The notes: generated by a model not told the origin, from the letters alone. Positions 2,763-57,312 are shown, counted from the first letter of the stretch. The stretch is DNA of 64,000 bases from Macrostomum lignano (GCA_002269645.1 NIVC01000748.1:1-64000), one strand, 5' to 3'. Made by a program: numbers and translations.

Positions 2763-3029
2763 AAAATCTATATTTCCATATAACAAAGGAATTATCTATT
2801 GATATTTGTTTCTCCAACTTCCATAATATTCGTCTGAATTCTTGAACGAAGTCGCGTACACATTGATTTTATAGTTTCGTCCTATTTCTTCCTAACAATG
2901 TCACTCTGATTGGGGTTTGCCTTGAACCAGCGTGATTGAATTATTGAAGTTAACTGCGTGTTATAACTGGTTTCGGTGAATACTTTTGTAAAAATCGAAC
3001 TCGAACTCCAACATATTTATGCAGCGGTA

Positions 3030-4135
3030 CTCTAAACTTCTCAAACTCGAAGCTTCACAAACTCGAAGCTTCACAAACTCGAAGCTTCACAAACTCGAAG
3101 CTTCACAAACTCGAAGCTTCACAAACTCGAAGCTTCACAAACTCGAAGCTTCACAAACTCGAAGCTTCACAAACTCGAAGCTTCACAAACTATTAACTTC
3201 ACAAACTCTAAACTTCACAAACTCTAAACTGCACAAACTCTAAACTTCACAAACTCTAAACTGCACAAACTCTAAACTTCACAAACTCTAAACTGCACAA
3301 ACTCTAAACTGCACAAACTCTAAACTTCACAAACTCTAAACTGCACAAACTCTAAACTTCACAAACTCTAAACTTCACAAACTCTAAACTGCACAAACTC
3401 TAAACTTCACAAACTCTAAACTGCACAAACTCTAAACTGCACAAACTCTAAACTTCACAAACTCTAAACTTCACAAACTCTAAACTGCACAAACTCTAAA
3501 CTTCACAAACTCTAAACTGCACAAACTCTAAACTGCACAAACTCTAAACTTCACAAACTCTAAACTTCACAAACTCTAAACTGCACAAACTCTAAACTTC
3601 ACAAACTCTAAACTGCACAAACTCTAAACTGCACAAACTCTAAACTTCACAAACTCTAAACTTCACAAACTCTAAACTGCACAAACTCTAAACTTCACAA
3701 ACTCTAAACTGCACAAACTCTAAACTTCACAAACTCTAAACTTCACAAACTCTAAACTTCACAAACTCTAAACTGCACAAACTCTAAACTTCACAAACTC
3801 TAAACTGCACAAACTCTAAACTGCACAAACTCTAAACTGCACAAACTCTAAACTTCACAAACTCTAAACTGCACAAACTCTAAACTTCACAAACTCTAAA
3901 CTTCACAAACTCTAAACTTCACAAACTCTAAACTGCACAAACTCGAAGCTTCACAAACTCTAAACTTCACACACTCTAAACTTCACAAACTCTAAACTGC
4001 ACAAACTCGAAGCTTCACAAACTCTAAACTTCACACACTCTAAACTTCACAAACTCTAAACTTCACAAACACTTAACTTCACAAATTCGAAATTTCACAA
4101 ATTCAAAATTTCACAAACTCTAAACTTCACACACT
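3030..4135. repeat. 16-bp minisatellite AAACTCTAAACT(T/G)CAC, with variant AAACTCGAAGCTTCAC at the left end
   Basis: Direct tandem periodicity. Confidence 0.97.
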
Positions 4136-5002
4136 GAAAATTTCATAAGCTCGAAGCTTTACGAACTTAAAACTTAGCATCACATTACTGAAATTTCGAA
4201 CGCACAAAACACCCCCATTATATTTAAGCCGAATCGAAATTTTACTAGTGACAAATTCAAGAATCACTGTCTGCCTGTCTGCCTTTTAACCAACAATCGC
4301 AGCTGATGCCAAGATTGACAACCCAATCTGCTGCGCTCTCGAGCTCTTCATCGATCCGCTCTTTGCCTCTCTGTCCCAGTCTGTGCCCACTCTCTCTCTC
4401 TCTCTCTCTCTCTGTGTGCCTTTTAGCTCGATAACTAGGCTGATGTGCCTTTCTCCTCGATATGTGGTGTTAAATAATTAAGTGGCAACTGAGGGTTGAA
4501 GGCGGCAGGCAGTTCTGCAAATTTGTGTCTCTCCAGTCACGATTTCTGTTAAAAATGATGCCACAGAAATATGACACACAATATACATCCTGACATGCAG
4601 TCTCTTTCGAGTCCTATTCGAAGCTCAAATATTTGGTCCGAGTGGCTAAAACTTTGAGGCAAAATCTGAAATCCTTAGTCTAACGGCGCGTGTCTACGTT
4701 TTTCATGAAGTAATTATTTTAATTTGAAGAAAATAGTCTCCCGGACATTCGGGTTGGCTCAGGGACTTCCGAAACAAGCTGGCTTATTTCCCCTGCAGAA
4801 GACCTGGACCCCCGCCTCCAACTCTCCTCAGGCTGCAAGATTAAGCAAACTCGTACAAAGGCGCCAATACTGCACGCAGGCCCGCACTCATACACATGCT
4901 CACACAGCTAGGGTGTCAAAATGTCAGAGTTTGAGAAAGTCAGAGAGTCTCAGAGATTTACAGTCAGAAGATTTAGAGGCTCTGGGAAAGTCAGAGAGTG
5001 GT

Positions 5003-5510
5003 GGCAGAGAGTCAGGGTGTCAGAGAGTCAGGGTGTCAGAGAGTCAGAGTGTCAGAGAGTCAGGGTGTCAGAGAGTCAAGGTGTCAAAGAGTCAGGGTGT
5101 CAGAGAGTCAGGGTGTCAGAGAGTCAGGGTGTCAGAGAGTCAGGGTGTCAGAGAGTCAGGGTGTCAGAGAGTCAGGGTGTCAGTGAGTCAAGGTGTCAGT
5201 GAGTCAAGGTGTCAGAGAGTCAGAGTGTCAGAGAGTCAGGGTGTCAGAGAGTCAGGGTGTCAGAGAGTCAGGGTGTCAGAGAGTCAGGGTGTCAGAGAGT
5301 CAGGGTGTCAGAGAGTCAGGGTGACAGAGAGTCAGGGTGTCAGAGAGTCAGAGTGTCAGAGAGTCAGGGTGTCAGAGAGTCAAGGTGTCAGAGAGTCAGG
5401 GTGTCAGAGAGTCAGGGTGTCAGAGAGTCAGGGTGTCAGAGTCAGGGTGTCAGAGAGTCAGGGTGTCAGAGAGTCAGAGTGTCAGAGAGTCAGGGTGTCA
5501 GAGAGTCAGA
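5003..5510. repeat. 16-bp minisatellite GAGTCAGGGTGTCAGA
   Basis: Direct tandem periodicity. Confidence 0.97.
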
Positions 5511-6308
5511 CACAGAGACAGCCAGCACTTTGCAGTGACCCGAGCTCCAATCTGGCAACCATTTATCCGGTTTCCCCTCGCCTCGGAGGGGATAATTGAC
5601 AGAGCGGGGACCAGCGCATCCGGAGGGGAAGGGCAGAAGGCCAGGGGCCGAACTGAGGAAGCTGCAAGCTGATGTTGGCCTTGTTCGGGAAAACATGCAA
5701 GAATTGATCCGACAAAAAAATATCAAAATCAAGCCATTTCAGCCCAGACCCCTAACCCGGAATCCTCTCTGATCCCAACAGATTTTTATCCCTAAGAACA
5801 GGAAGAAAAAAGCGTTGCTGCTAATGGGGCTGATGGCTGGAATTAATAGAAACAGCATGCAAAAAAGTGACAACAATATGAAAAAGAAACTGTTTTTCTG
5901 CTGAACAGTTCCCCATTAGAGTTAAGCAGGAATGGGGAAAAAACTATAACTAGGGTACTATTTTGGGAAGAACTGAATGCTCCCCATCTCAGCGAAAAAG
6001 AGAGGATTTGAAACTCGATCCTACTCAAGCTCTGTCACTTTGCAAAGCTTTCGAGCCAAGCCTTCAACTGCAAATACCAATTCCTTTGGGAAATCTTTAA
6101 TATGCAGTTGCCGATGTGGACCTCAAATTTAATGGCAATTCAGTGCCCAGACAGCGAAACACTCTCTTCTAGAACGTGCTGAAATTGAAAAAAGAACTGC
6201 TACAAGCTGACTAGAGAAAGCAAAAAAACATTTTAAGTCACAGCTGTTAGAGGACTGAGGACTCCCTCAAGCACTCTAGGGGACGTTAGTGAAATTAACT
6301 AATTTACA

Positions 6309-6790
6309 GCCAACCCCCTCACCACCACCCCACAGCCAACCTCCACACCCACCAACCCACAGCCAACCCCTTCACCCATCACCCCACAGCCGACCCCCTC
6401 CACCCACCACCCCACAGCCAACCCCTCAGCCACCACCCCACAGCCAACCCCGTCACCCACCACCTACAGCCAACCCCGTCACCCACCACCTACAGCCAAC
6501 CCCATCACCCACCACCCCACAGCCAACACCCTCACCCACCACCCCACAGCCAACCGCCTCACCCACAACCCCACAGCTGACCCCTCACCCGCCACCCCAC
6601 AGCCGACCCCGTCACCCACCACCTACAGCCAACCCCGTCACCCACCACCTACAGCCAACCCCATCACCCACCACCCCACAGCCAACACCCTCACCCACCA
6701 CCCCACAGCCAACCCCCTCACCCACAACCCCACAGCCGACCCCCTCACCCGCCACCCCACAGCCGACCCTCACCCACCACCCACCGCAAA
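6309..6790. repeat. C/A-rich degenerate minisatellite (CCCCACAGCCAACCCC...) just 5' of a Notch acceptor
   Basis: Irregular tandem units. Confidence 0.9.
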
Positions 6791-6830: not shown

Positions 6831-9800
6831 GCACCCGCTGCGAAGTCCCACCGCAGTCAGAATCGGTGTCAGATCCCTGCGCCTCGAACCAGCCGTGCCT
6901 TCACGGTGGCCTGTGCAGAAGCTTCGCCGCCACCGGCACATTCGTATGCGACTGCGCGTCCGGCTGGTTGGGCCTTCGCTGCGAGCAGCTGCTGAACCCG
7001 TGCACCGAATCATCGTGTCTTGGCCGAGGCCGCTGCTTGCCGACAGCAGCTGGCGGATTCAACTGCCGTTGTCATGCGGGATTTCGAGGCCGATACTGCG
7101 AGCATTTATCGCAGCCGACCGGCTTGCCGACAGTCCAGCCGGAACCCTGCAATTCCAGCCGGTGGCAGTCCTGGTGTCTGAACGGCGGCCGCTGTTTCCA
7201 GTTGGTTGGCGTCGAACTTCCGGTGTGCCAGTGTCGACGCGGTTTCACCGGCAGTCGCTGCCAGATCGACGTGAACGAATGCGAGCAGTTCGGCGGGGCC
7301 TGTCTGAATGGGGGCGAGTGCGTTGACGAGCCTGGAGGGTTCAGGTGCACCTGCAAACCCGGCTTTCAGGTGAGTGGCTGAGTGAGGATTGGAGACAGGT
7401 GCATTACAGCACATGGAGACTTGAATTTCAGGAAAGATCTGCAACAATTAAAATTTATTTTCAGATACTACACGTCCTCCATGTATATTTTATACACACC
7501 ATTTTTATTTAGCTAATTAATCTGTTTAACTGGTAGAGCCTGAAAAATCCTCCTTAGGATTGATCTTCTAATAGCCCAAGAGTCCTCTTGCCCCTCTTTC
7601 TTACAAAATGGTCATTTTTCACTATCAGCCCCATCCCATCCTCTGCTACCCACCCCATCCTCCGCTACCCACCCCATCCTCCGCTACCCACCCCACATCC
7701 CCCGCCAGCCACCGCATCCTTCGCTACCCACCCCATCCTCCGCTACCCACCTTATCCTCCGCTACCCACCCCATCCTCCGCTATCCACCCCATCCTTCGC
7801 TATTCACCCTATCCTCCGCTACCCACCCCATCCTCCGCTACCCACCCCATCGTCCGCTACCCACCCCATCCTCCGCTACCCACTCCGTCCTCCGCTACCC
7901 ACCCCATTCTCCGCTACCCACCCCATCCTCCGCTACCCACCCCATTCTCCGCTACCCACCCCATCCTCCGCTACCCACCCCATTCTCCGCTACCCACCCC
8001 ATTCTCCGCTACCCACCCCATTCTCCGCTACCCACCACATTCTCCGCTACCCACCCCATCCTCCGCTACCCACCTTATCCTCCGCTACCCACCCCATCCT
8101 CCGTTACCCACCCCATTCTCCGCTACCCACCCCATTCTCAGCTACCCACCCCGTCCTACCAAATACTACAAACGTACCTGACATTGCAATGCACTATTAG
8201 TCACTTAATTCTTATTAGGTAACGGCTCCATTTATAAAGTCCATCCGTTTTCGGGAAATACGCTTCCCCAAGGATCTGAGAGCCAGAGCAAGCACAGTAA
8301 AGACGCACGGGCACAGGCCCATATCTTTTCTTTCTATAAAATGATTTAATAACTTTCCCATCCCTGAAGTTGAGTTGATGCTAATTCAAACAAAAAATGT
8401 TCTGCTACGGAAAAACAGCACGAAGTCCATGGATAATGAGCAGGAGGTTTTTGTAGCATTATTGCGTGATCTTTTTGCCAGAGTCTGCCTGACTTTCGGC
8501 TCTATCAAGTGTACTTTACTATTTTCACTGTTTTACTACTGATCAAATTTTATTATTCACCGCTGCTATTCACATTTTTCAAGTTCACTCTACCTCTTAC
8601 ACTCTTCACACTGCACTCGTAACTCTTCACTTCTCACCCGTTACTCTTCACTCCTCACCCGTCACTCTTCACTCCTCACCCGTCACTCTTCACTCCTCAC
8701 CCGTCACTCTTCACTCCTCACCCGTCAAAGTCTTCACTCCTCATCCGTCACTCTTCACTCCTCATCCGTCACTCTTCACTCCTCACCCGTCACTCTTCAC
8801 TCCTCACCCGTCACTCTTCACTCCTCACCCGTCAAACTCTTCACTCCTCACCCGTCAAACTCTTCACTCCTCACCCGTCAAACTCTTCACTCCTCACCCG
8901 TCACTTGTCACACATTTACTTTGCAGTCTTCAATCCTCACCCGTCACTCTTCACTCCTCATCCGTCACTCTTCACTCTTCACCCGTCACTCTTCACTCTT
9001 CACCCGTCACTCTTCACTCCTCACCCGTCACTCTTCACTCCTCACCCGTCACTCTTCACTCCTCACCCGTCACTCTTCACTCCTCACCCGTCACTCTTCA
9101 CTCCTCACCCGTCAAACTCTTCACTCCTCACCCGTCAAACTCTTCACTCCTCACCCGTCAAACTCTTCACTCCTCACCCGTCACTTGTCACACATTTACT
9201 TTGCAGTCTTCAATCCTCACCCGTCACTCTTCACTCCTCACCCGTCACTCTTCACTCCTCACCCGTCAAACTCTTCACTCCTCACCCGTCAAACTCTTCA
9301 CTCCTCACCCGTCAAACTCTTCACTCCTCACCCGTCACTTGTCACACATTTACTTTGCAGTCTTCAATCCTCACCCGTCACTCTTCACTCCTCATCCGTC
9401 ACTCTTCACTCTTCACCCGTCACTCTTCACTCTTCACCCGTCACTCTTCACTCCTCACCCGTCACTCTTCACTCCTCACCCGTCACTCTTCACTCCTCAC
9501 CCGTCACTCTTCACTCCTCACCCGTCACTCTTCACTCCTCACCCGTCACTCTTCACTCCTCACCCGTCAAACTCTTCACTCCTCACCCGTCAAACTCTTC
9601 ACTCCTCACCCGTCACTTGTCACACATTTACTTTGCAGTCTTCAATCCTCACCCGTCACTCTTCACTCCTCACCCGTCACTCTTCACTCCTCATCCGTCA
9701 CTCTTCACTCCTCACCCGTCACTCTTCACTTCTCACCCGTCACTCTTCACTCCTCACCCGTCACTCTTCACTGCTACCTAGTCAACTGTCACACCTTTAA

Positions 9801-12800
9801 TTTGCAGTCTTCACTTCTCACCGGACGTTGCTCTGTTTTTCACTGTTTTCTGCTCATTCTATTCTCAAGGTTTGACACTTGTCACCCACCCTACATCAGA
9901 AGTTCCCTAAGCCCTAATCCGATCTTTTTGCCGCCTCATCATCCGCTTTAATCAGCCACCTTAGCAACCTGTTTGACCTAAGCTACCTGCCTTTGTGAGA
10001 TCAAAGTTCTAATTATTTTTAGGTTTTTAATGAAAGCAGATGTTTACTTAGATTGGAAGAAACAAGGTGACTAGACTAAATGAAGAGCAGACTCACTTTT
10101 GACCCTCTGGATAGCCAGGTATCTTGTATCAATCCGATTCTATTTCCGGATCGCAAAAGTTTTCTGCACCAATTCCAATAGCTAATTTATTTATTTTTAG
10201 TTAATGGGTTAATCATCTCCTTTGTTTCTCTTCATTTCTATCCTCTGTTCCCAGCTCACAATCGCAATCAATACGCCTTAACTCTGTCATTTATGCTTGC
10301 TCTTCCCGTTCTGCACTGTAGCTCGTACCAAAATTCTCTCTAATTGCCCAACACAGCAGCACCCACCCCATCCTCCGCTACCCACCCCATCCTCCGCTAC
10401 CCACCCCATCCTCCCCTACCCACCACATCCTCCATTACCCACCCCATCCTCCCCTACCCACCACATCCTCCATTACCCACCCCATCCTCCGCTATCCACC
10501 CCATCCTCCGCTACCCACCCCATCCTCCGCTACCCACCCCATCCTCCGCTACCCACCCCATCCTCCGCTACCCACCCCATCCTCCGTTACCCACCCATCC
10601 TCCGCTACTCACCCCATCCTCCGCTACCCACCTCATTCTCCGCTACCCGCTCCATCCCCGCTACCCACCCCATCCTCCGTTACCCACCCCATCCTCCGCT
10701 ACCCACCCCATCCTCCGTTACCCACCCCATCCTCCGCTACCCACCCCATCCCCGCTACTCACCCCATCCTCCGCTACCTACCTCATTCTCCGCTACCCAC
10801 TCCATCCCCCGCTACCCACCCCATCCTCCACTACCCACCCCATCCTCCGCTACCCACCCCATCCTCCGCTACCCACCCCATCCTCCGCTACCCACCCCAT
10901 CCTCCGCCACCCACCCCATCTACGGTTACCCACTTCAGCTTACCTAAACATGATCAAAACTCCTAAATTCAACACCTAAAAACTACGAGGGGCGTACTGA
11001 AAGTTTTGAGATACACCGAAACCACAAATGTCTGAAACAAAATTTCTGTCACAATTTTTCGAAGTAGCTCGTATCTTTGTTTTCTAGTATTGAATATCAT
11101 AAACGACCTTTCCTTGCAGGGCCCGTACTGTCAAGGTGACACGGGTGAATGCGCGAACAGCCTCGGTCCGTGCAGCCCAGCGGGCACCCTTCGCTGCCTC
11201 CGCAGAGGTCCGTCCGACCGTCTGAGCAGCTTCACCTGCACCTGCAAGCCGGGCTTCTCCGGTCCGCTCTGCCATCGACGCGTCGACCCGTGCGACAGCG
11301 TCGTGTGTCTCGGCGGCGGTCGCTGCGTCTTCGACAGCTCGGCTGGTCCCGCCTGCCTCTGCCCGCCCGGTCGCGCCGGTCAGCACTGCCAGTTCATCGG
11401 CTCCGCCTGCGACGAATCGCCGTGCCGCGGCGCCGCCTCAACCTGCCGGCAGGTTCGCCTTGGCGGCGGCTTTCGTTGCCACTGCCAGCCAGGTCTGTGC
11501 GGCCCCACCTGCGCGGAACGGTGCCCGACGTTCGCGGAGGCGCGCAACCGCTGTCGCGAGGCCGGCTGCGACGTCCTCGCAGGCGACGGTCGCTGCGACA
11601 GGCGCTGCAGCGGGCCGGCCTGCGACTGGGACGGAGGCGACTGCGGCGGCCTGGGCGCTCGGCCGTGGGTGAACTGCACCGCTATGAGGCTCGGCTTGGC
11701 CGCCTGCGACTCGGTGTACGCAGACGGCGAGTGCAACACAGTCTGCAACACCGAGGCCTGCCTGTTCGACGGCGGCGACTGTCGAGACGATCGGCTGTCG
11801 GCGAGAGCGAAGCCCGACTCGGACCCGTGTCCCTATCGCTACTGCGCCGATCACTTCGCCGACGGCAGCTGCGACCGAGGCTGCGACAGTCCCGCCTGCC
11901 TGTTGGACGGCGGTGACTGCGCTGAGCCGGCGGCCGCTCCGCCGTCCCAGTCGCCGGAGGCAGCAGCAGCGCCGCAGTCGTCTTCAAAGACATCCGCCGA
12001 CGCGGCTGCTTCGATGTGGCGCGAATCCCAACTCGACAAAACTGCTGCTAGCGAGCTGCTGGAACTGGAGGTGGCGGCGTCTCCAGCCGAAGCGTCCGAG
12101 GCCATCCGTTCGCTGACGCGAAGTCTGTCCCGCAACCTGGGCACGCTGCTGCGACTTGTCCAGCCTCCGGTGGCCGCCACCGTCCCCGGCTCGGCTGACG
12201 CAGCGCTGGTCAGATTCCAGCTGGACGCTTGCTTGGACGCCAAGATTTTTTCCAGCTCGTCGGCCGCTGACGCCAATCAAGACGCGTCGCTGACCGATTT
12301 CTGCTATCGAAGCGCAAACTTCGCAGCCCAGGCGGTGGCTGCCGGGGTCATGTCCAGCCGCCTGCTGCTGCCCCTGCGGCTGCGTCGGGTTACTTCGGTT
12401 GGCAGCGGTGACAGCCAGTTGTCTGCGGCGGGTAGCGGTGGCGGCCGCAACAGGAGCGGCGGCAGCGGCGGCGGCGGGGGCGGCGGCGTGATCGGAGTGA
12501 GTCGCTCTGGCGGAGTCGGCAGCTTCCTGCTGCCAGCCGCAGTGGCAGCCGCCTGCCTGCTGGTGCTGGGCCTGCTGCTCGGTTTCCTTCTCAGCGCCAT
12601 GCGCCGAGGCGGCGTCGTGGCCGAGACGGACGGCAACAATGAAGCAGGAGGATTCCGTGGGTGTCGTCGGCAGGCGCGAGTCACGGCGCCGCTAAGCCTG
12701 ACCGCCTCGCCTGTGGCGGGGACTGGCACGGTGGATTCAGCCTCGATGGCTCCACCGCCAGCTGCCAGCCTGAGCGGCTCTCCGCTGCCGCTGCACCGGC

Positions 12801-12883
12801 TGCAGCCGCATCATTATCAGTCACCGGCGCAGCTTCCAGTTCCTAGGATGGCCTACCGAGCTCAGAGACTCGCTTTGGGTCAG
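6831..12883 (+). CDS. notch-like: Notch-like receptor, internal exons 6831-7369 and 11120-12883 (>=7 EGF, 3 LNR, NOD, NODP, TM, start of cytoplasmic tail)
   Basis: Acceptor ctgcag|GC at 6830, donor CAG|gtgagt at 7369, acceptor ttgcag|GGC at 11119, donor CAG|gtgagt at 12883; the phases join as KPGFQ|GPYCQ. Six-Cys EGF repeats include a Ca-binding IDVNEC. Three LNRs end in DGGDC. LELEVAASP..LSRNLGTLLRL resembles NOD; VRFQLD..CYRSANFAAQAVAA resembles NODP. Hydrophobic TM FLLPAAVAAACLLVLGLLLGFLLSAM then RR. The first exon starts mid-EGF, so 5' exons lie left of the window. Confidence 0.9.
7628..8152. repeat. 19-bp minisatellite CTACCCACCCCATCCTCCG (array 1)
   Basis: Tandem periodicity; Notch intron. 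Confidence 0.97.
8620..9830. repeat. 21/22-bp minisatellite CCCGTCA(A)CTCTTCACTCCTCA with a recurring ~30-bp interruption
   Basis: Interruption CTTGTCACACATTTACTTTGCAGTCTTCAAT at ~8904, 9184, 9338 and 9615, degenerate at ~9785. Confidence 0.97.
10361..10922. repeat. 19-bp minisatellite CTACCCACCCCATCCTCCG (array 2)
   Basis: Same unit and orientation as 7628-8152. Confidence 0.97.
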
Positions 12884-13083
12884 GTGAGTGACTACCGATT
12901 TTGGATTCTGAAAATGCATTATGATTAGCTATTAGTATATGGATTTATGTAATAGTATATTAACATTTATTATATATAACTAACTCAATAATACTTTTTC
13001 CTACAATTAATTATACTTTTAACCAACGCTGACTCATACGAGCGACTACCGACAGAAGGTTTCATCTGCCTAGTTAAGGTTCG

Positions 13084-13165
13084 ATCCAACACCATCAGAC
13101 CCTATCCAACACCATCAGACCCTATCCAACACCATCAGACCCTATCCAACACCATCAGACCCTAT
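13084..13165. repeat. 20-bp tandem ATCCAACACCATCAGACCCT x~4
   Basis: Tandem periodicity. Confidence 0.9.
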
Positions 13166-13625
13166 CCAACTATCCAACTATCCTATCCGAAATCATTAGA
13201 TCAGTCTAAAAGCTTTCGAACTACTCGTAATGAGAAAAAAATGAGAATTTTTGCTTTCCTCTGCTTTCGCACTAACCAGCCTAGCCTTTTACTAGCTCGT
13301 ACCCAACAAGACTCGGTGCAAAGAGACGCTCTGCAGAGTATCCATTGCTCACGCTAATCTAGTTAGCAACTAAAAGAAGCAAAACATGCACAAGATAGCA
13401 AGCAGTCGTCTAGTGTAGACACAAGATTGAGTCTGACAGGCCCAAAAGCAGATTTGGCAGCACCGATGACAGCAGCCGCATTAGATGCCAGGATGCTCCA
13501 TCACTTTTAACGCCTGTCCCATTATCTCGCCAACCCATCTACATCGCTGATTTCGATCAGCTCCAAGCATCGCCAAGCATCAAACAGTTTTTCTTCTTTC
13601 TACAAAAACCATCAAACTTGTCCAG

Positions 13626-14780
13626 ACGGCCTCGTCGCCAGGCAGCTTGAGTCTGCATCCGGCAACTGACTCGGACTTCTTGAGTTGCCAATGTCTGCAG
13701 CAACAACAACAACTGCTGCTACTGCTGCTGCTACGTGTTCAGCAGCTTCGGGACCGGCAACTGCAGGACCGTCAGAACCGTCCCCCAGCGGGCTGGCAGC
13801 AGAGCGGAGCCGCGACGACTGTTGGTGGAAGCCAAGAAAGAGAAGTACGCTTGTGACACTTGTACGCTTGTACAATGACGCTCGACCATCGTGTAAATTT
13901 TGCTGCAAAATGCATTGGCAAGACATATATGATGTTTTCAGCTTTTTAGCGCTGGATTTTAGCACCTCCTAGCCTTCCAAATAATATATATCAATAAATA
14001 TTTGCAACCGGGTTGTTAGCACTACATCTTCCCACAATCAGTACTGACGGCAATTATGCCCATTCCGGTGACCCCTGAGTACACACTAGCGCTCCCATAC
14101 TGTACGCAGGCTTGCACTCGTACACACGATCACACAGGGTGTACAGCGTGTACACACGCTCACCCTTTGACTTTTTAATCACCAATTATTGAACAGTTTT
14201 GTTTTACTAAGCTAGGGGTCACGATAAAATTCAATCTGAAAAAAGCCTCTTAATAGAAAAGAACAAAGAACGAATGAGCTGGGAACTGGGAACTTTCTAT
14301 CTCGAAATGAATTCTTCAGTGAAAATTGTCCAGCAACAAAACTTGCTCGTCTTCTGCTTTAGTTGATAAGAGCAACAGGTATGCGTGTTGCGTGAGTGTC
14401 AGGAGCGTGGTTGATATTTTCAACGATAGCCCTAATTACTGATTCTTTTAGTTATTGACGCTACTGAAAATAATAATTACGTTTCCTTCAGCAGTTTCTT
14501 TTAAAAATAAAATACACATGCCGTCTTACTACTAGTTTAAATAGTAGAATAATAAACATTTATCTGTAGAATTTTGATTGTTATAAACGACTACACAGAA
14601 ATTATCTTTCTAGATCGTCAGCGATGGTTCAACAGTCTTGAGCATCGGCGTTCGATCAGCCTCATCCAGCAGCATCTCCAGCAGCAGCAGCAGCAGCAGC
14701 AGCAATTGCATCTTCAACAACAGCAGCAGTTTTGGCAATGGAAGGAGAATCTGGGCTCGCTGACTGGAAGTGCAGTGTGA
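13626..14780 (+). CDS. Candidate terminal exons of the Notch-like gene (~13626/13685-13844 and 14613-14780, low-complexity/polyQ)
   Basis: GC-rich islands with acceptor-like ccag (13625) and ttctag (14612) and donor-like GAA|gtacgc (13844); CAG/CAA runs. The reading frame cannot be fixed from sequence alone. Confidence 0.35.
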
Positions 14781-15423
14781 CGATAGCTGCTAGGCAACTT
14801 TAATGTGCTATAAATCAAAACGCGTCATAAGATCTCTATTTTAAACTATTCGCTAATCGCAAAGCGAACTATTTCATATCAATCTACTTGAGTTTGAAAA
14901 CAATTTACTTACAAATTTAATGTTCTTTTTTAACATGTCAAAAATGTATAATTTATATTGTAATAATTTTTCTAAGAATCTATTATAATTAACACTGCAT
15001 TTTCTAGGCAAACCATCTATCTGGAAACGCGATTTCTAGTATTTCTAGCCATATTGCATCTAGCAGGCCTAAGGCGTATTGAAGCGAGGTTTAAAATAAA
15101 CGCTCGACAGTCCTGTCGGCTGAGAATGTCTATGGCCAAAATCCATTTGATCCAGTGTGAAACGGCCGCGGTCTGGCTGTCTGTGGTCAATCCTCACTTG
15201 GCGCTATGCTGATAATATTGATTGACTGCTTGGGAAATAACGACCATAATGTATCGATGAGCTCTTTTAAGCACTCGTAACTCGTCAAAATTGTTTTCAA
15301 ATAAAAACGTCTTGTAGAAAATTTTTGTTAAAACCAGTGCATTGTCTAATGAAGCCAGCTATGCAAACAGTGTTTAAACAAGTGTTTTTAATGGCTCTGG
15401 CGCCCCTTGATGCTAAATCATCA

Positions 15424-16035
15424 AACCCAGTTTCCACTGACCGAGCAGGAACTGTTAGACAAACCCAGTTTCCACTGACCGAGCAGGAACTGCTAGACAA
15501 ACCCAGTTTCCACTGACCGAGAAGGAACTGTTAGACAAACCCAGTTTCCACTGACCGAGAAGGAACTGCTAGACAAACCCAGTTTCCACTGACCGAGCAG
15601 GAACTGCTAGACAAACCCAGTTTCCACTGACCGAGAAGGAACTGTTAGACAAACCCAGTTTCCACTGACGAGAAGGAACTGCTAGACAAACCCAGTTTCC
15701 ACTGACCGAGAAGGAACTGCTAGACAAACCCAGTTTCCACTGACCGAGAAGGAACTGCTAGACAAACCCAGTTTCCACTGACCGAGCAGGAACTGCTAGA
15801 CAAACCCAGTTTCCACTGACCGAGAAGGAACTGCTAGACAAACCCAGTTTCCACTGACCGAGCAGGAACTGTTAGACAAACCAAGTTTCCACTGACCGAG
15901 CAGGAACTGCTAGACAAACCCAGTTTCCACTGACCGAGCAGGAACTGCTAGACAAACCCAGTTTCCACTGACCGAGCAGGAACTGTTAGACAAACCCAGT
16001 TTCCACTGACCGAGCAGGAACTGTTAGACAAAGCC
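15424..16035. repeat. 38-bp minisatellite x~16
   Basis: AGACAAACCCAGTTTCCACTGACCGAG(C/A)AGGAACTG(C/T)T head-to-tail, no spacers. Confidence 0.97.
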
Positions 16036-17443
16036 AGCCATTTTCTTTCTCATTCAATAATAATCTCTATTACGTTTTCCGCACGAATCGGGTGGTGGAG
16101 ATGCGAGTTGAGAGGCGCAAACCGGACGTATATAGGCAGCTAACTGCCGACTCTCCCACCATGCAGCGTCAAGCCCTGCTCAAAAGCATTGTTTCATACG
16201 CAGCTAGGCTGCCTAATGCAGTCCCGCACTGCCGGTGAAAAACCATTATCGCATGAATACGAGCTACATCAGCAAATTTAGCTTGAAAAAGTTGATAGCG
16301 ATTCACTGAAGCTTTTTGAATTTAAAACGGAATCTCTGTTTTTGCATGGTGACGCTTCCTGTCGAGGCTTAAAAAATTATACTATAAATTTCCGAACTGA
16401 CTTACTCTTTGTATCGGCCAAAAAATCTGCTTTTTTTCTTATTCTGTAAGCAAAATAAAGTAATGCATAAGAGTAATATTCTCGTAGTGCACTTGTTTTA
16501 TCCACTAGTTTCAGAAAGGAAATTAAATTTGGATCTATTGTCTGGGTTTTCTACCAATGACAATAGATTCAGTAATTCTCCACAGAAAAGCTATGTAATA
16601 TCACGTGCCTATAATCTAAATCCGATGCACTTTCTACAATAATTCCTGAGTAAAGTAGTTTAACTGTCTGTTTTACAGAAAGTCCTTATTCGATATGCTT
16701 TTCATGTCACATGTTGCCTCTATTCGAAATTGTGGTGGCGTGTGAAATGTGTCTGGGTTGTTGGTGCTGGGTTGATTTGTGTGTTTCGTAGGGGTTGCGC
16801 TGCTCTGGCGTTATTTTGTCTTCTCTCTGTACTGCTCTGGCGTTTTAGTCCCTTTCTACGAGTACAATAAATCGTTGTCGAATATATAAGTCGAGTATAC
16901 CAGCCCAACTCTGCATCGCGTGGCGCAATAGCGTCACTCAGAAGTCAATACTGGGCCTAGAATTTACTCCGCACTCTCAAAGCTGGTGACTTTTTAATTT
17001 GTTGAGTATATTTAAAATCTGAAAAGTAGGATACTGAGAATCTTGCGCATGCCTCATCCATGCTTTTCTGTCAGACGAAATTCAAGAAGAAGACTCTCCC
17101 TGGAATCTACTTGGTTCATTCACTATTCGGAAGTCCGAAAGTTTGGACTTCCGTTACCGTCAAAAATTAAAATTACGATCTTTTTTCTGCAAAAAACCGG
17201 CCGCATATTTCGAAATCTATAAGCTTGAGTAGCATCTTTTGATTTTGCTAATTACAGGATTGTACTTCACGAGAAAAAACTTTATTCAGTGCAAAACAAT
17301 GAATGAAAAATAGGCACGCCTAAGTTCTTCATATTGTTCTATTGAATATCCAAACTCTGTTGAAAATTCATTCTTTGCAACAGGATATTGAGGAGGCCAT
17401 CAACACATAGGGGATGCTTATTTTTCATTTTCACTGTCTCTTT

Positions 17444-19640
17444 TTACCACAGACGGCACTCATCGGAGGCGAGCTCGGGCTGGGAAGTCGGACAGCCGAA
17501 CGCTCTGAAGAAGTCGTCATCGCCGGAGATGAGGCTCCGTATGCGCAGTCTGCCTGGCGTGTGGCTCCACGTCTCGCTGCCAGTCTCCATGAAGTGATGT
17601 AGGAACTCTTGGCTACTCTTCGAGCAAAAAGTCCGCAGGCTGGCAATGTAGAGCAGCTGCTGCGGTGAGTAGCGCTCCATGAATCCTGGCAGTTGTTGGT
17701 CGATGCCCGACTCAGCTAGAAGTTCGATAGTCACCGACAGACCGATCCTGTCTGCGAAGTCCTCCTTAACGTTGGTCTTGTTGAAGCCCAGTCGGAGAAG
17801 CAGACTTTGTCTAAGGCAAGCGTGCTTCTCCTGGAGTCGGGCACCAAATGAGGCATTTAATATCCCATCGTCATGTTGATTGAATGAACCAAATACAGCG
17901 TGCGTGAGCTCGTGAGCGAGCACCAGCGCTTGAGTACCGACACTGACTGCCGCTGGCTGGTCTGACAGATAATGCGGATATTCTAAGAAAGCTGGCGTCA
18001 GAATCACTGCCTTCTGATATGCGTTATAATGCGGCGATTCCTGGTCAAAAGTTTCCTCCATCGTTCGAAAGATCAGGTAATGTTGAAGAGCCAACGCTCG
18101 GACTAGAAAGCAAGCCGGGCTAACTAATATTGTGCATCCTCTGGGTGGCATCGAGTCAAACGCTTCGCCAAAATGCTGCACCAGAGCAGTCTCGCTGACT
18201 TGCTCTGTGAAAAAATTCAACTTAGTTTGCTGCAGTCGTCGCTTCAACACGGCCTTGTCGGGCTCAGGAATCCAAGTCTGCGACTCCAATGCCGACGCGT
18301 AGACCGTCTTGATTCGGTGGAAAATATCAAAGATTTCAGCTTCAACTGCGAGACGCTCCTCTTTTAACATCCTGGCGTAGCGACCGTGCAGCAGGGGGCG
18401 AAATGCTCCTTCAAAGTTGACAGTCGAACTCGATGACTCGCTTCTTACTTTTCCGAATAGAACGTCCAAACATTTGGCATTTTTTGGAGTTGAAAAGATT
18501 GCAGCGCCCAGCACGCAGATTTGGTTGAGTATGATCAGTTTAGGCAGCTCTGTGAATCGCCTACCGCATTTTTCTAGAACGCAAACGGTACGCAGAAAAG
18601 ATTTCGTATCTGGCAGCACCAGCGGTGTCAAATCATCAGCAGGCGGATGTCCCGACAACTGAAGGTTCAGCCGCAGAAACTCGTCGAACCCGAAGGTTAA
18701 GTTGGCTCGCCGAAGCTGCCGCTTAGCGTCGCCCACCGTCTGTACAGGTAATTCGTCTGCAACAACCCTTTCTGCGGTTCGGTTGCAGGGATCATTCCAC
18801 AGAAGCAGGTCGGATTGAGCACGTCGTATAAGGCCAAACAGACTGCCGCCGCGTGATCTAAGCTGCAGCAATCGCATCATTCTGTAGGCCTGAAACGGCA
18901 GATTTCTCAACAACGGCCCGACAACCTTGAGACCATGAAAATTATCGTTAGACGTCAGCAAAATTGCCGGTCTGCCAGCCGCATTCGCAACGCCTGGTAT
19001 AACAATCATCGGGCTGATGAAGCTCTTTGCCGACTGTGCCGGCATCAGCTGTTCGAGTCTCAGCTGTTGCCGCATATTCAATCCTTTAATCGCGCGATCT
19101 GCAATTTCGTCCAGAATCTCGGCTCCGTTGGCCAGCAGCATTCCATGGAAGCTCCAGTCTTCAAGGGTTGTTTCTAGCAAGGCGCACTCTCGGAAAGCTT
19201 TCACAGCCAGCTGCTCATAGGCTTGAAGCCTTGTCGAGTTTGGCTGCCCGGGCTGACCGGACCCTGTGCAGTTGGCGTCCCAGCAACCCGTCACTAGCTG
19301 CTCGGTCACTCGCTCGCTGTACGCGGATCCGGTCCGCTGAATGTAGTCTAAATTGACGAATATCCTCTGCACCAGGCTCTGGCCCGTGAACTGCTGTTTA
19401 GAGCGGAATCCGCCGCACAGGAATTCTTCAAAGTCCTGACACGGATCAGACGAAGTGTTCAACGTGCTTTGCAGTTCCATCGACATTTTCCAACAGTTTA
19501 GCGTTCGACAAACTCTTGTTCCATTTCGTAGCAGTTTCGTTGGCAGCTCCAAATGGTGGGAGCAAAGACATCAAGGAAGCGGTCAAGAACACAATGTTGC
19601 CTACCAGTGGCTTCAATGATGTCAGTCGAAGCTCTGCCAT
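17444..19640 (-). CDS. Neprilysin-like M13 zinc metallopeptidase, type II membrane, intronless, ~731 aa, one 1-bp frameshift near 19553
   Basis: N-terminal anchor LVGNIVFLTASLMSLL (ORF 19446-19640) joins ORF 17444-19552: DPCQDFEEFLCGG, HELTH zinc motif, EDFAD third ligand, HTPGRLRI, C-terminal CRLW. Confidence 0.9.
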
Positions 19641-20740: not shown

Positions 20741-21565
20741 TTAATCGAACAGAGACAGGCACTCGCAGAGGGCACCTCGCAGGTCCGGATCGTTCTCCCA
20801 GAAGTCAGATATCTTGCTGGTTTTATACTTGCCGAGAGTATTCTCCCTATCCAAATAGTTGCTTGGCTCCTTCTCTGCCCAGTAACTGGCGTTGAACGCG
20901 ATGTTGCAAGCGACCCAGTACCAGCCATCGGCAGCATGCGCACTTCCAGGTGCTTGAAAGCCTCCAACAAAGAAGTAGCCAATGCTGTAATTGTTGTAGA
21001 TGAAGTCCAAATGCTGCAGCTCAGTAGTGCTCGTCATGTCAGCCATGATCGACAGGCTCCTTTGCCCTGCTGCCACGACATTGATGCTGGACTCGAAACG
21101 TAGTTTAGCCTGTACTTCACTCCGCACAGGTCGTCTCCGTAGCCAGAAGGACACAGCGCGCCCGCCTCGAGTCCCGGCTGCTGCTTCACAAACACCCGGC
21201 CTCTCCTGGAGCAGCCGCAGTCCCTCACCGACTTGCTGCACTTGTCGAACACGAACAGCTGGCACGGACCGTCAGCCAGGCTGAACGCCTGACAGTGCCG
21301 GTTGCGGCTGCACATCAGCGAGCAAGAGAGCTCGTCGGTAGCCATGCCGAAGGTCTGCACAAACTCAGGGTTGATACAGAGAAATCCATTGATTGGTTTG
21401 AAAGAAACCTCGTTCGAACAGTCGTCCTGAGCAGTTCCATAGGTAACCAGCAGGTGCAGCAGTGAACAGATCAACGCCACTCTAAAGTGTAGACCTAGTG
21501 AGTTAATTTTTTGAGCGCATGAAATCACAGAAATTTGCCTCAATTTACCGTAGCTTGTAGTCCAT
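20741..21565 (-). pseudogene. PAN/apple + C-type lectin gene copy 1 (frameshifted)
   Basis: Exon1 21549-21565 (MDYKLR), 67-nt GT-AG intron, exon2 20741-21481. Signal peptide, PAN-type C-x3-C-x5-C-x-AF-x6-C-x-L, and CTLD (FVGG, WYW, EPS, LCEC). Frameshift at ~21055. Confidence 0.85.
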
Positions 21566-22314
21566 CGTTTCAATTTTCCGAGGCATGTAAATTAAGTGAC
21601 ATCCGGCCTAGAACTATATACGAGTACCCATCATGCCAATTCGCTTTGATTGGCTGCTACTCGCGCGTATCTATTAATTTTATTTGGAAGTGAATTTTGA
21701 GACTTTAGCTGGAAGTCGCTGACTAAAAGTAATTTTCAAAGTAGTTCGTACATTCATGACTATCTTGCAAAAAGTCGGAACGTACGTCTTGCACATTTTA
21801 GAAACGTCACGGGCAAGGACGCTGATTTACAGTAAATAATCCAGTCACTGCTACTGTTGTCCAGAGTACACAGTCTTGGCAGAAGAGACGAGATGACTAG
21901 AGAACTGCACTCACCGCTGCTCTAAAAAGAACTTCGTAGTCGGAAAGACTCTCAAGCGAAAAAAGCTTGTCAAATTACCGGCGTAACTTTCGACAGAATA
22001 TCTGCAGTTGAAAACATTTGTAGCATTCTTTAGTGCTGAATAGAGTAGTACTGTTCTAAACGATTTCTATTTTAAGACAACTTTCTTTTGCGTGAAAATT
22101 CATCATTAATATTTTAGTCGACAGGTAAATTTTTAAAAACTTAAGGCGCAAAGAAACTTTCAGGTTTTGCGGAAACAAAACTCATTTTAATAATATATGC
22201 ATAGCTAATGCTGCTTTCACATTGAATGTGTACCCTATACACAGTGTATACACAATGCGGATACGAAGTTGGTTTTTCTTCCGGTAAAACTAATATTTCA
22301 TTTAGCTGCGCATG

Positions 22315-23147
22315 TCAGTCGAGGGGAGACCAGCATTCGCACAGGACGGCTCGTGGGGTAGCGGAGAAGTCTCTGAAGTCGGACAGCTTGTCGTGATCGA
22401 ACCACCTTCCGATAGCATTCTCCGGATCCTCGGGCTCTCCGCTGCCCCACAGGCTGGCGTCAACAGAGATGTTGCAGCCGACCCAGTACCAGCCGCCTGC
22501 TGGCTCCGGGCTGCCAGCCGGCTGGAGGCCGCCCAGCCAGAACGAGGTGCCGCCCGCCCGGCTGTCGTAGATCGAGTCCACGTGGCTCATCTCGGAGGCG
22601 TCCACCACGTCGGCCATGATCACCAGACCGCTCTCCGACTCGCACAGGCGTCTGCTCGGCCACCAGAAATCGGCGTTAAAGTGCAGCTTGTACTTCACTC
22701 CGCACAGGTCGTCTCCGTAGCCAGACGGACACAGCGCGCCCGCCTCGAGTCCCGGCTGCTGCTTCACGAACACCCGGCCTCTCCTGGAGCAGCCGCAGTT
22801 CCTCACCGACTTGCTGCACTTGTCGAACACGAACAGCTGACACGGACCGTCAGCCAGGCTGAACGCTTGGCAGCGCCGGTTGCGGCTGCACATCAGCGAG
22901 CAAGAGAGCTCGTCGGTAGCCATGCTGAAGGTCTGCACAAACTCAGGGTTGATACAGAGAAATCCATTAATCGGGTTGAAAGAAACCTCGTTCGAACAGT
23001 CGTCCTGAGCAGTTCCACAGGGAAGCAGCAAGTGCAGCAGTGCACAGAGCAGCGCCACTCTAAAAAGTAGTGAGTCAATTTGTTTTTTTCTGCCGCATGA
23101 TCAAATCGCACAAAAAACTCCTCAATTTACCGTTGCTTGTAGTCCAT
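22315..23147 (-). CDS. PAN/apple + C-type lectin gene copy 2 (intact, 253 aa, secreted)
   Basis: Exon1 23131-23147 (MDYKQR), 71-nt GT-AG intron (cg|gtaaat...tttag|a), exon2 22315-23059. Signal peptide, PAN motif, CPSGY, FWLGG, WYW, WGSGEPE, LCEC; no TM. Confidence 0.9.
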
Positions 23148-26089: not shown

Positions 26090-26816
26090 TTAGTCGAAGG
26101 GAGACCAGCATTCGCACAGGACGGCTCGTGGGGTAGCAGAGACCTCTCTGAAGTCGGACAGCTTGTCGTGACCGTTCCACCTTCCGATAGCATTCTCCGG
26201 ATCCTCGGGCTCTCCGCTGCCCCACAGGCTGGCGTCAACGGAGATGTTGCAGCCGACCCAGTACCAGCCGCCTGCTGGCTCCGGGCTGCCAGCCGGCTGG
26301 AGGCCGCCCAGCCAGAACGAGGTGCCGCCCGCCCGGCTGTCGTAGATCGAGTCCACGTGGCTCATCTCGGAGGCGTCACCACGTCGGCCATGATCACCAG
26401 AGCTCTCCAACTCGCACAGGCGTCTGCTCGGCCACCGCAGAAATCGGCGTTAAAGTGCAGCTTGGTACTTCACTCCGCACAGGTCGTCTCCGTAGCCAGA
26501 CGGACACAGCGCGCCCGCTCGAGTCCCGGCTGCTGCTTCAAAACACCTGGCCTCTCCTGGAGCAGCCGCAGTCCCTCACCGACTTGCTGCACTTGTCGAA
26601 CACGAACAGCTGGCACGGACCGTCAGCCAGGCTGAACGCTTGGCAGCGCCGGTTGCGGCTGCACAGAGCGGCACAGCCGATCTCAGAGTGCGAGCCAGGT
26701 GGAGTTTCAATGAAGTCGCTCCTGATGCACAGGTAGCCTTTGATTTGTCTGTAGCTTTGTAGCACTGCACCTGGAAGTCCAAACGCCAAAAGGATGATCA
26801 CCAGCTTTGCTGACAT
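26090..26816 (-). CDS. PAN/apple + C-type lectin gene copy 3 (several 1-2 bp indels; possibly assembly errors near the gap)
   Basis: ATG 26816 with signal peptide MSAKLVIILLAFGLPGAVL. Core and CTLD are near-identical to copy 2 apart from about six small indels between 26380 and 26545. Lies ~300 bp from the N gap. Confidence 0.8.
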
Positions 26817-27128: not shown

Positions 27129-27213
27129 NNNNNNNNNNNNNNNNNNNNNNNNNNNNNNNNNNNNNNNNNNNNNNNNNNNNNNNNNNNNNNNNNNNNNNNN
27201 NNNNNNNNNNNNN
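27129..27213. other. Assembly gap (85 N)
   Basis: Run of N. Confidence 1.
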
Positions 27214-29133: not shown

Positions 29134-32100
29134 TTAAGAACAAGCGCCAACAGTTCCAGACCCAACCAGCTCCATCAGTTGAGTCCGAGTAGCAGCGTCC
29201 AACGATTCGAATAGTCGCTTAGTCGCCTCGTTGCCTAGCGACGAATTCAAAGCTAGCAGCTCCCTGCGCAGATGCTCCTGCACTGAAAGTCGCTGGACAC
29301 AATCGGCCGCGTTAGCCAGCATTTTCGAACCTCGTGACTAGATTTGTCTTCTTCTTGCTGTTGCTGTTGTTGCTGCTGTTGTTGCTGCTGCTGCTGTAGA
29401 CCATCCGAAGCGTTATCAGCAGTGCCGGAGCAGTGAACCAACACGCCGACAACTGCTTCAATTATGTCGGCAAACACAGCGCCAGCTGAGTCAGTCTGAT
29501 TATTATTAACAAGAGCTGCAAAGCCGAAAGCCAGCAGCCCTAATCCGAGCAGTTTCAAATCCCGCAGTTTAGCCGAACGTTTACAAGCTGCAATCCAAGC
29601 GGCCAGGAGAGCCGATGGCAACGCTTGGCTGGACTGCGACGGCAAAGCGGCCAGCAGCAGCAGCGGCTGACTGAGAGCCACCCGGCTCACCAGCTTCCAG
29701 AAGGCCACCCGATTGGCGGCCAGGCAAGAAGAAGCGGAGGCTACGTCCAGGCAAAAGCTGGATAGTAGGCCCGGCAGTAGGGGGACCAGCAGCTGGGCAG
29801 ATGGTTGAGGCGACACCTGCAGAGACAGATAGGCGATTCAATGGGACAGAGTAGCTCCCATCACGACCCCTGGTTCGATTCCGTGCATGCCTGAGATAAT
29901 TTATCGCTCAGGTGTCTATTTATCTTTCTAGATAAGACTCACCTTTAGCAAATCGTTGCACAGCAGCAGAGGCTGCAGGCGGCGCTCGAGCAGCAGCCCG
30001 GCACGGCTAGGCAAGCTTGGCAGGCTGCCAGCAGAGCGGCGCCGTGAGCGGCCAAGTAGCGATCGCAGTCAAGGTAGGCGCACACCTGCAGCAGTCTGCG
30101 CTCCGGAGCTTCCATGCAGGCGCGCTCGGCGATGCGAGAGTGCAGACAGGCCAGGCTCTGAGCGAAGCAGTCCTGGGTTGGCGGGGATGGCGATTATTGC
30201 TTAGAGGTGGACAGTAGTTTAAAAGAGGTGGTTGGTGCCGGTATGTATCGAAATCATTTAAGAGAAAGAAGAGAAAGTGGGACAATGAGGGCGAGGGGGA
30301 GAGGGTGAAAGGGTAGAGAGAGAGAGGAGTGTGAGAGGGGGAGGGGAGAAAGTAAGATGGGAGAGGGCAGATGGTGAGAGGAGAGACGATGATAGGAGGG
30401 AGGGCAGAGGGTGAGAGGGAAGAGATGAAGAGGGTGAGAGGGGAGAGTGAGAAAGGAGAGGGTGAGGGGGGAGAGAGCAGAGGATGAAAGAGAAGAGAGG
30501 AAGAGGGTGAGAGGGAAGAGGGTGAGAGGGAAGAGGGTGAGAGGGAAGAGGGTGAGAGGGAAGAGGGTGAGAGGGAAGAGGGTGAGAGGGAAGAGGGTGA
30601 GAGGGAAGAGGGTGAGAGGAGAGGGGATAGGGAATGGGGTGAGAGGGTGAGAGGTAAGAGGGTGAGAGGTAAGAGGGTGAGAGGGGAGAGGGTGAGTGGA
30701 GAGGGTGAGGTGAGAGGAGAGAAGATGAGAGGGTGACAAAGCCGCACCTGTTCAGGATAGGTGTGCAGATGGCAGAGCAGGTACAGCAGCAGGTGCAGGC
30801 CGCCCTCCCAGAACAGGTCAGGCCCGGTGAGGCAGGCGTGGGCCAGAGGCAGGGCCAGATGGCCCAGGCTGAGATCGCCCAGCTTGGCAAGCTCGCACAG
30901 CACGGACAGCACGGCTAGGCGCGCCTGGTCCCCTCCAGCCGAGTCCCACATGCCCGGCAGGTGCGGCACAAGAGCTGGCAGGCAGGGCCGCAGGTCCGCT
31001 ACTGAATATCTGGAAATGATTTTGCAAAACCATAAATTTGATAATTGTTCAACACATAACAGATCATCACATTCACATAGCATTTAATTGTTTGCATGGG
31101 GCTTTAGGGGAAATGGGCATATCACACAATGTACATTTCCCCATCTACCTCTGTCTCGCCGTCTACCTCTGCCAGTCTCACCTATCTACCTCTCCCAGTC
31201 TCACCTATCTACCTCTCCCAGTCTCACCCTATCTACCTCTCCCAGTCTCACCTATCTACTTCTCCCAGTCTCACCTATCTACCTCTCCCAGTCTCACCCT
31301 ATCTACCTCTCCCAGTCTCACCATATCTACCTCTTCCAGTGTCACCCTATCTACCTCTTCCAGTCTCACCCTATCTATCTCTCCCAGTCTAACCCTATCT
31401 ACCTCTCCCAGTCTCACCCTATCTACCTCTCCCAGTCTCACCTATCTACCTCTCCCACTGTCACCCTATCTACCTCTCCCAGTCTAACCCTATCTACCTC
31501 TCCCACTGTCACCCTATCTACCTCTCCCAGTCTCACCTATCTACCTCTCCCAGTCTCACCCTATCTACCTCTTCCAGTGTCACCCTATCTACCTCTCCCA
31601 GTCTCACCATATTTATCTCTCCCAGTCTCACCATATCTACCTCTCTCAGTCTCACCATATCTGCCTCTTCCAGTCTCACCATATTTACCTCTCCCAGTCT
31701 CACCATATCTGCCTCTCCCAGTCTCACCATATCTGCCTCTTCCAGTCTCACCATATTTACCTCTCCCAGTCTCACCATATCTGCCTCTTCCAGTCTCACC
31801 ATATCTACCTCTCCCAGTCTCACCATATTTACCTCTCCCAGTCTCACCCTATCTACCTCTCCCAGTGTCACCCTATCTACCTCTCCCAGTCTCACCCTAT
31901 CTACCTCTCCCAGTCTCACCCTATCTACCTCTCCCAGTCTCACCCTATCTACCTCTCCCAGTGTCACCCTATCTACCTCTTCCAGTCTCACCCTATCTAT
32001 CTCTCCCAGTCTAACCCTATCTACCTCTCCCACTGTCACCCTATCTACCTCTCCCAGTCTAACCCTATCTACCTCTCCCACTGTCACCCTATCTACCTCT

Positions 32101-36044: not shown

Positions 36045-36249
36045 GCCGGCTTCAGAGCTCTATTTATTATCTAGCAGTTGCCGTTTTGCAATTTCAAGTT
36101 ACGGTAACAGCTGAAAATTTATTAGCTTTAATGTTATAACTATTTAATGCAGCTGAGAGACTGAGAGGCCCTATAGGGATCAGAAGGACTTAAGAACTGG
36201 GATATTCTAAAGAAAATAAGGACCTATGGGATTTATGGATAGACCATAG

Positions 36250-52360: not shown

Positions 52361-52438
52361 ACAGGACTAAGGGAGAGACGTTGAGACGCCCTGAAAAAAG
52401 TGAGTTCGGCTGCAACGATTTTGTTAATCTGTACCCAA

Positions 52439-57236: not shown

Positions 57237-57312
57237 TTTTTATCGGAATGCTGTTGCTGTTGGGATCATTCTGTGGATTGTTTAAATATTTTATATTAGC
57301 TAATTAATCTGC

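Follow-up and report, generated by a model that had tools for sequence, protein, structure and literature searches.

The 64,000-nucleotide stretch of DNA analysed here (GCA_002269645.1, NIVC01000748.1:1-64000; hereafter the window) carries on its + strand a gene of Notch type, gene A, that encodes the extracellular and membrane-spanning parts of a receptor and lacks the modules with which Notch assembles its transcription complex. This anatomy, comprising EGF repeats, three LNR modules, a transmembrane (TM) segment and a cytoplasmic tail with neither a RAM motif nor ankyrin (ANK) repeats at the locus, is well supported. The best explanation is that A, an old paralogue of Notch known to date from the flatworm Macrostomum lignano only, has lost RAM and the whole ankyrin domain. 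The window itself is from M. lignano, as the translation of positions 11120-12883 (588 amino acid residues, aa) is 88-95% identical to UniProt models from this species, the matching entries being P0001 (895 aa), P0002 (748 aa, 'Notch receptor 3') and P0003 (777 aa). Our principal point of reference is a second gene, paralogue B, which is the Mlig029643 family with models P0004-P0006; the genomic locus of P0004, NIVC01002279.1, is referred to below as L001.

The large exon of gene A, at 11120-12883, is an uninterrupted open frame of 588 codons. It is preceded by the acceptor ...CCTTGCAG/GGC (TTGCAG/GGC) at 11119/11120 and closed by the donor CAG/GTGAGT at 12883/12884, just past which the GC fraction falls from the 0.66-0.73 seen within the exon to 0.37. 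The splice sites and the LNR match given below agree with the initial annotation of this DNA, in which a Notch-type ectodomain had been placed on a large exon at this position. The same annotation started the gene at 11120; gene A in fact begins at or before 6831, since an exon at 6831-7369 on the + strand (acceptor CTGCAG/GC, donor CAG/GTGAGT) belongs to it. Over 6833-7369 the window and model P0002 agree at 100% identity, and the model splices 7369 to 11120, reading ...KPGFQ/GPYCQ... across the junction. The intervening intron (7370-11119, + strand) is full of tandem repeats, with Tandem Repeats Finder arrays at 7630-8157, 8584-9772 and 10361-10920. Exon 6831-7369 opens in the middle of an EGF repeat, in phase 1, and searches of the window by tblastn with the M. 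lignano models gave no further EGF exon upstream of it. We conclude that the 5' end of gene A, with the start codon, the signal peptide and most of the EGF repeats, lies outside the window, and neither start codon nor signal peptide was found for it in the 64 kb.

At least seven EGF repeats of gene A fall in the window. The upstream exon encodes a partial repeat, three full repeats and the first half of a calcium-binding-type EGF that is completed in the next exon (Pfam EGF, E = 1.2e-23 at 6866-7381; EGF_CA, E = 6e-9). The large exon opens with the second half of this split repeat and three more, the membrane-proximal repeats at 11120-11518 (+ strand), recognised by their cysteine patterns and by Pfam EGF at E = 7.7e-5. 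Judged by cysteine pattern, six repeats are strict or regular and one, assigned by eye, is a variant; one partial repeat is additional to these. Three LNR modules follow at 11552-11920 (+ strand), spanning 11552-11644 (LNR-A), 11675-11782 (LNR-B) and 11828-11920 (LNR-C), and matched three times by Pfam PF00066 at E = 1.7e-22. All 18 of the 18 LNR cysteines are kept, and comparison of the three modules with the solved structures of the negative regulatory regions (NRRs) of human NOTCH3, NOTCH1 and NOTCH2 gives E values from 1e-24, for NOTCH3, to 2.5e-17.

Between the LNRs and the membrane lies a diverged heterodimerisation (HD)-like domain (12053-12403, + strand), collinear with the HD of Notch and with that of paralogue B. 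It contains the NODP-like motif DFCYRSANFAAQAVAA...LLLPLRLRRV (12296-12391), the helix motif RSLTRSLSRNLGTLLRL and the sequence ALVRFQLDAC. Its assignment as a putative NOD/NODP region is made from position and collinear motifs, without a significant match. Of the 'complete' EGF-LNRx3-NOD-NODP-TM architecture initially described, therefore, the EGF repeats, the three LNRs and the TM segment stand, whereas the N-terminus is outside the window and NOD and NODP fall short of significance. The divergence of the HD is common to both M. lignano paralogues, because B, which bears ANK repeats, is likewise devoid of a precomputed NOD or NODP hit. A Gly-rich spacer connects the HD-like segment to the TM segment, FLLPAAVAAACLLVLGLLLGFLLSAM (12524-12601, + strand), which comprises 26 hydrophobic residues followed by RR and reaches a Kyte-Doolittle 19-mer maximum of 2.75. 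This segment aligns to the TM segment of B, and AlphaFold2 gives a helix at residues 339-363 of a 456-aa query in what is a low-confidence model.

The cytoplasmic tail (12602-12883, + strand) is of low complexity and extends for 94 aa from the RR to the donor, or 95 aa counted from the Met that ends the TM segment. Its translation as far as the donor at 12883 contains no tryptophan, and hence no RAM motif of the form PhiWPhiP. Aligned globally from LNR-A to the end of the exon, A and B stay collinear over LNRs, HD motifs and TM segment alike, and the alignment sets RRQARVTAPLSL (12665-12700) of A opposite the RAM-like RLWCPPGF of B, with RQARVTA of A facing that motif. The tail of about 95 low-complexity residues, lacking RAM at the place where it is expected, is thus as first described. 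Pfam searches revealed no recognisable domain or motif in it.

There is no ankyrin-coding sequence on either strand of the 64-kb window as assembled. Searching the window by tblastn with the Notch intracellular domain (ICD) of P0007 gave no ANK match (best E = 1.7), and the two ANK exons of paralogue B together with a consensus ANK triple repeat gave nothing (best E > 1). A hidden Markov model (HMM) of the ANK repeat, constructed from P0007, B and the consensus and run with --max against six-frame open reading frames (ORFs) of at least 20 aa, reached E = 0.28 at best, with a - strand ORF, whereas the control locus L001 gave 3e-44 and 1e-18. The control is partly circular for the HMM; the search of L001 by tblastn with the P0007 ICD is independent of it. 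Pfam returned no family at E ≤ 1 for the + strand ORFs of 30 aa or more between 12992 and about 22300, which were joined with X spacers, and beyond about 22.3 kb the absence of ANK is founded on tblastn and the custom HMM. The initial annotation had reported no ankyrin exon downstream on the + strand and had suggested an HMM search as a check; the result holds with all three methods. The three near-identical M. lignano models P0001-P0003 are all without ANK.

Paralogue B provides the positive control. Models P0004-P0006 are the next-closest proteins to A, with about 40% identity overall and 56% in the LNRs, and they too show no ANK. At the genomic locus, nevertheless, the TM exon of B encodes ...RREAGRLWCPPGFQPL... 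with its RAM-type PhiWPhiP motif (RLWCPPGF), and two ORFs situated 5.7 and 8.0 kb past the TM exon, within an interval of 5.7-8.5 kb from it (L001 27390-27992 and 29703-30419, + strand), encode Notch-type ankyrin repeats, matching the unrelated Notch ICD of P0007 at E = 7e-20 and 6e-13. This ANK domain appears in no M. lignano protein of the database searched: the UniProt and NCBI models P0004-P0006 do not include the ANK exons, and the last exons of P0006, at 23.0 and 23.9 kb of L001, are small and spurious. B is a canonical Notch with truncated public models. As its ANK exons were recovered with the same tools, the searches have power and the negative result in A is meaningful. The exon ends about 95 aa past the TM segment in A and about 92 aa past it in B, from which we conclude that an ancestral intron position has been kept and that the loss comprises everything formerly encoded after this intron. 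The earlier term 'truncated Notch paralogue' holds within the 64 kb insofar as RAM and ANK are absent at the locus; 'truncated' is imprecise, the exon ending at an intron position that B retains.

Two irregularities were seen in B itself. At about 20300-20450 of L001, the reading frame of LNR-A and LNR-B is not that of LNR-C, the HD and the TM segment, the frame changing by about 1 nt near GCCCCTCC; and LNR-C reads CDTAAYLFDGGDC, with Tyr at an expected Cys, the same Tyr being present in P0005 and P0006. These features reflect either an assembly indel or real damage.

A possible terminal coding exon of gene A lies at 13701-13856 on the + strand (CTGCAG/CAA ... TGA), with 51 Q/L-rich codons (QQQQLLLLLLLRVQQLRDRQ...EREVRL) and an AATAAA at 13993 downstream. 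It matches the C-terminus of model P0001 at 100%. As evidence this is weak, since spurious terminal exons of a similar kind occur in the predicted models of paralogue B.

Notch cannot bind CSL and recruit Mastermind unless it has both RAM and ANK. Having neither, the product of gene A cannot drive canonical transcription. With its EGF repeats, LNR/HD region and TM segment retained, it would sit in the membrane and probably still meet DSL ligands, and no fragment released from it could assemble the CSL-Mastermind complex. By titrating ligands in trans or in cis it might damp signalling through the canonical paralogue or paralogues. A Notch engineered to consist of ectodomain and TM segment acts as a dominant negative, suppressing endogenous Notch signalling through ligand competition, and for this reason a ligand-titrating, non-signalling Notch paralogue is the best-supported reading of gene A. 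We put it forward tentatively, its chances being a little short of even. Expression, ligand binding and decoy or dominant-negative action are inferred throughout, and a decoy or dominant-negative role, which the initial annotation had put forward beside that of a CSL-independent receptor, is plausible as a proposal. That gene A is expressed and selectively maintained, with a force-gated NRR kept and the RAM-ANK region replaced by a new short tail, or with the ectodomain shed at RLRR, seems to us distinctly improbable.

Comparison with known systems helps to place gene A. Like canonical Notch (Drosophila Notch, human NOTCH1-4, LIN-12/GLP-1), it has EGF repeats, three LNRs with all their cysteines, an HD-like C..SA..AA..L..P....V pattern and a single TM segment with a basic stop-transfer sequence, in the same order. 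Unlike canonical Notch, it has no RAM PhiWPhiP motif, no ANK repeats and no PEST/TAD region, and its HD is unrecognised by Pfam; far fewer EGF repeats are visible in A because its N-terminus is outside the window. Paralogue B resembles A in its collinear HD motifs and TM segment, in the intron 92-95 aa past the TM segment and in public models that are ANK-less; it differs in possessing RLWCPPGF and two ANK exons, of which A has neither. Moreover, the region from EGF repeats to tail is a single exon in A, whereas the B models match three separate blocks of the B locus by tblastn. The engineered Drosophila dominant-negative Notch, which comprises the extracellular and TM parts, has in common with A the retention of ectodomain and TM segment and the absence of the ICD; A, in contrast, is a natural gene with a tail of 95-146 aa. 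Human NOTCH2NL is, like A, a lineage-specific truncated Notch paralogue, and it modulates Notch signalling and does not transduce it. NOTCH2NL, however, has N-terminal EGF repeats only and is without LNR, HD or TM segment, whereas A keeps the membrane-proximal half; the presence of LNRs and a TM segment rules out A as a secreted fragment of the NOTCH2NL type. UniProt calls the B-family model P0006 a 'Delta-like protein', and we considered A as a DSL ligand; this was rejected because LNRs are present. Pfam gave no match to DSL or MNNL in the exons of gene A in the window, and EGF_DL_JAG, at E = 0.0077, was below its cut-off.

Of the 155 nearest LNR proteins whose sequence extends far enough past the LNRs, those that seemed ANK-less sorted into three groups. 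P0013 is a truncated canonical Notch and P0144 a Notch with divergent ANK repeats. P0127 is an ANK-less LNR membrane protein that shares with A the EGF repeats, the three LNRs, the TM segment and a tail without ANK. Its architecture is another one: about 250 aa of extra cysteine-rich repeats separate the LNR region from the TM segment, so that its LNRs guard no juxtamembrane cleavage site. Canonical Notch is at least as close to A as P0127 is. According to reviews, the planarian Notch family is expanded to six genes (PMC10970066), and domains 'seem to be lacking in a few species', for which errors of prediction may be responsible (PMC2770060). In the literature searched we found no description of an ANK-less Notch from a flatworm.

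A number of observations weigh against the interpretation of gene A as an old Notch paralogue that titrates ligand. With the 5' end of the gene, any ligand-binding site resembling EGF11-12 falls outside the window. Pfam finds no match to NOD in gene A, and NODP scores 19.7 bits, under the Pfam cut-off of 25; comparison with canonical HDs by local hhalign and hmmsearch yields collinear motif matches that are statistically weak. AlphaFold2, given an alignment of seven rows, produced an unusable model of gene A (predicted local distance difference test score of 35), in which the HD shows a strand-helix-strand-strand-helix-strand order at low confidence. When 1.84 billion representatives were searched exhaustively, no sequence from outside A's own cluster aligned past the LNRs, and no match to A beyond the LNRs was found outside M. 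lignano. A-type clusters hold entries from UniProt and MetaClust only, with no NCBI or transcript-derived protein among them. The GC content of third codon positions (GC3) is 0.65 in the tail and 0.72-0.86 elsewhere in the exon, a weaker codon bias from which relaxed constraint or decay is possible. A Ty3/gypsy-type element at 1-2485 lies upstream of gene A, or within one of its introns, in the same orientation. Finally, there is room for assembly error: a run of 85 N, which is a scaffold gap or else masked sequence, occupies 27129-27213 between two of the lectin-like genes and an importin-like gene, and the stretch from 12.9 to 17.4 kb holds tandem repeats (13084-13170 and 15422-16037).

The last of these points could be taken to mean that A is a canonical Notch, RAM-less for real, and that its ANK exons lie past the end of the 64 kb, fall in the 85-N gap or, through a misjoin between 12.9 and 17.4 kb, have come to be on another scaffold; paralogue B shows how readily M. 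lignano Notch models lose their ANK exons. RAM, however, is absent within the well-supported exon itself, and two models from other copies or assemblies run on into the same 13.7-kb sequence. As initially noted, gene A is met at 17444 by a converging neighbour, which is an exon for an M13 peptidase of neprilysin/ECE type (17444-19552, - strand; HELTH, ending ...CRLW*; Pfam Peptidase_M13, E = 2.4e-15). The recognisable genes of the window from 17.4 kb onwards all run on the - strand, at least eight antisense genes occupying the next 50 kb, so that a hidden ANK exon would require an intron of more than 51 kb extending across all of them. The 85-N gap, moreover, lies past the M13 and lectin-like genes. 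We give little credence to an assembly or window-edge artefact.

A second possibility is that A is a duplicate without present function, from which a rearrangement removed the ANK half, and that the remainder is unexpressed or turning into a pseudogene. The low GC3 of the tail, the lack of a clustering NCBI model or transcript-derived protein, the repeat-rich locus with its upstream retroelement and several frame disruptions in model P0003 are all in keeping with this, as is the portrayal of M. lignano as a hidden polyploid (PMC10468722). The 588-codon frame is intact, on the other hand, and every EGF and LNR cysteine is kept. The LNRs of A and B are each other's closest relatives, with a score of 374 and 56% identity, beyond any other match. 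Against 17 canonical Notch proteins the LNRs of A have a mean score of 285 and those of B 271, the targets having been picked as the best matches of A, which biases the comparison slightly in its favour. The LNRs of A are thus as conserved as those of the ANK-bearing B, even though overall identity is only about 40%, and this, with the 18 cysteines kept, indicates long-standing constraint on the ectodomain. The few amino-acid differences between the window and P0001 or P0002, compared by eye, are in the linker, the HD and the tail and not in the EGF or LNR modules. These sequence comparisons suggest an old paralogue that has been maintained, rather than debris, and we consider a functionless duplicate unlikely.

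The completeness of the NRR raises a third possibility, in which A would be a working receptor with a new output: proteolysis might free a Q/L-rich, CSL-independent tail, or a furin-type cut at RLRR might shed a soluble EGF-LNR ectodomain. A full NRR is hard to explain in a passive sink. By eye, RLRR/V (RLRR at 12377-12388) lines up with IEA/V of Notch1, at the position of the S2 bond; the juxtamembrane GFLLSAMRR of A resembles GVLLSRKRR of Notch. The full NRR and RLRR/V at the S2 position keep a proteolytic receptor or a shed ectodomain in play. The tail, however, is of low complexity, poorly codon-biased and lacking any recognisable domain or motif, and the terminal Q/L exon is a gene-model prediction only. 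We think a receptor of this kind very improbable. The RLRR at 12377-12388 conforms to the furin-type motif R-X-R-R and is found also in P0001-P0003.

Other features of the window may be described briefly. The Ty3/gypsy-type pol ORF (1-2485, + strand) is uninterrupted over 790 aa, encodes reverse transcriptase, RNase H and the zinc finger and core of an integrase, and is cut by the start of the window. Large tandem-repeat arrays at 3029-4175, 5000-5509, 6306-6782, 7630-8157, 8584-9772 and 10361-10920 have units of 16, 16, 27, 19, 21 and 19 nt, respectively, with one identical 19-nt unit on either side of the 21-nt array at 8584-9772. Such arrays occupy introns and give rise to long spurious ORFs rich in P, S and T. 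The array at 15422-16037, intergenic between the converging gene A and M13 gene, contains 16 copies of a 38-nt unit at 96% identity. Beyond the peptidase are four lectin-like paralogues on the - strand (20741-21573, 22315-23058, 26090-26816 and 48939-49727). They have in common a Cys-rich module at the N-terminus (CQAFSLADGPCQLFVFDKCSKSVR...) and a C-terminal half that weakly resembles a C-type lectin (Lectin_C, E = 0.003, in one copy only). The - strand also carries an importin-beta family gene at about 29200-36050 (IBN_N, E = 7e-11), whose introns are filled with repeats, a Mint/X11-like gene with PID and PDZ domains at about 52400-57250, and a ZMYND8/11-like gene with a coiled coil and a MYND finger at about 60880-63400.

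These results have a bearing on how Notch genes are counted in this animal and on how the pathway may be controlled. The ANK exons of paralogue B are unannotated and the public M. lignano Notch models are truncated, so domain-based counts of 'ANK-less Notch' in this genome are untrustworthy unless the DNA is inspected. Notch signalling is usually tuned by ligands, by glycosylation and by cis-inhibition. If the ligand-titrating reading of gene A is true, a non-signalling receptor paralogue with ectodomain, NRR and TM segment would give the pathway a genetically encoded damper, akin to the dominant-negative Notch that has been built by design, and in M. lignano, a model for neoblasts and regeneration, gene A would offer a direct handle on the setting of Notch dosage.

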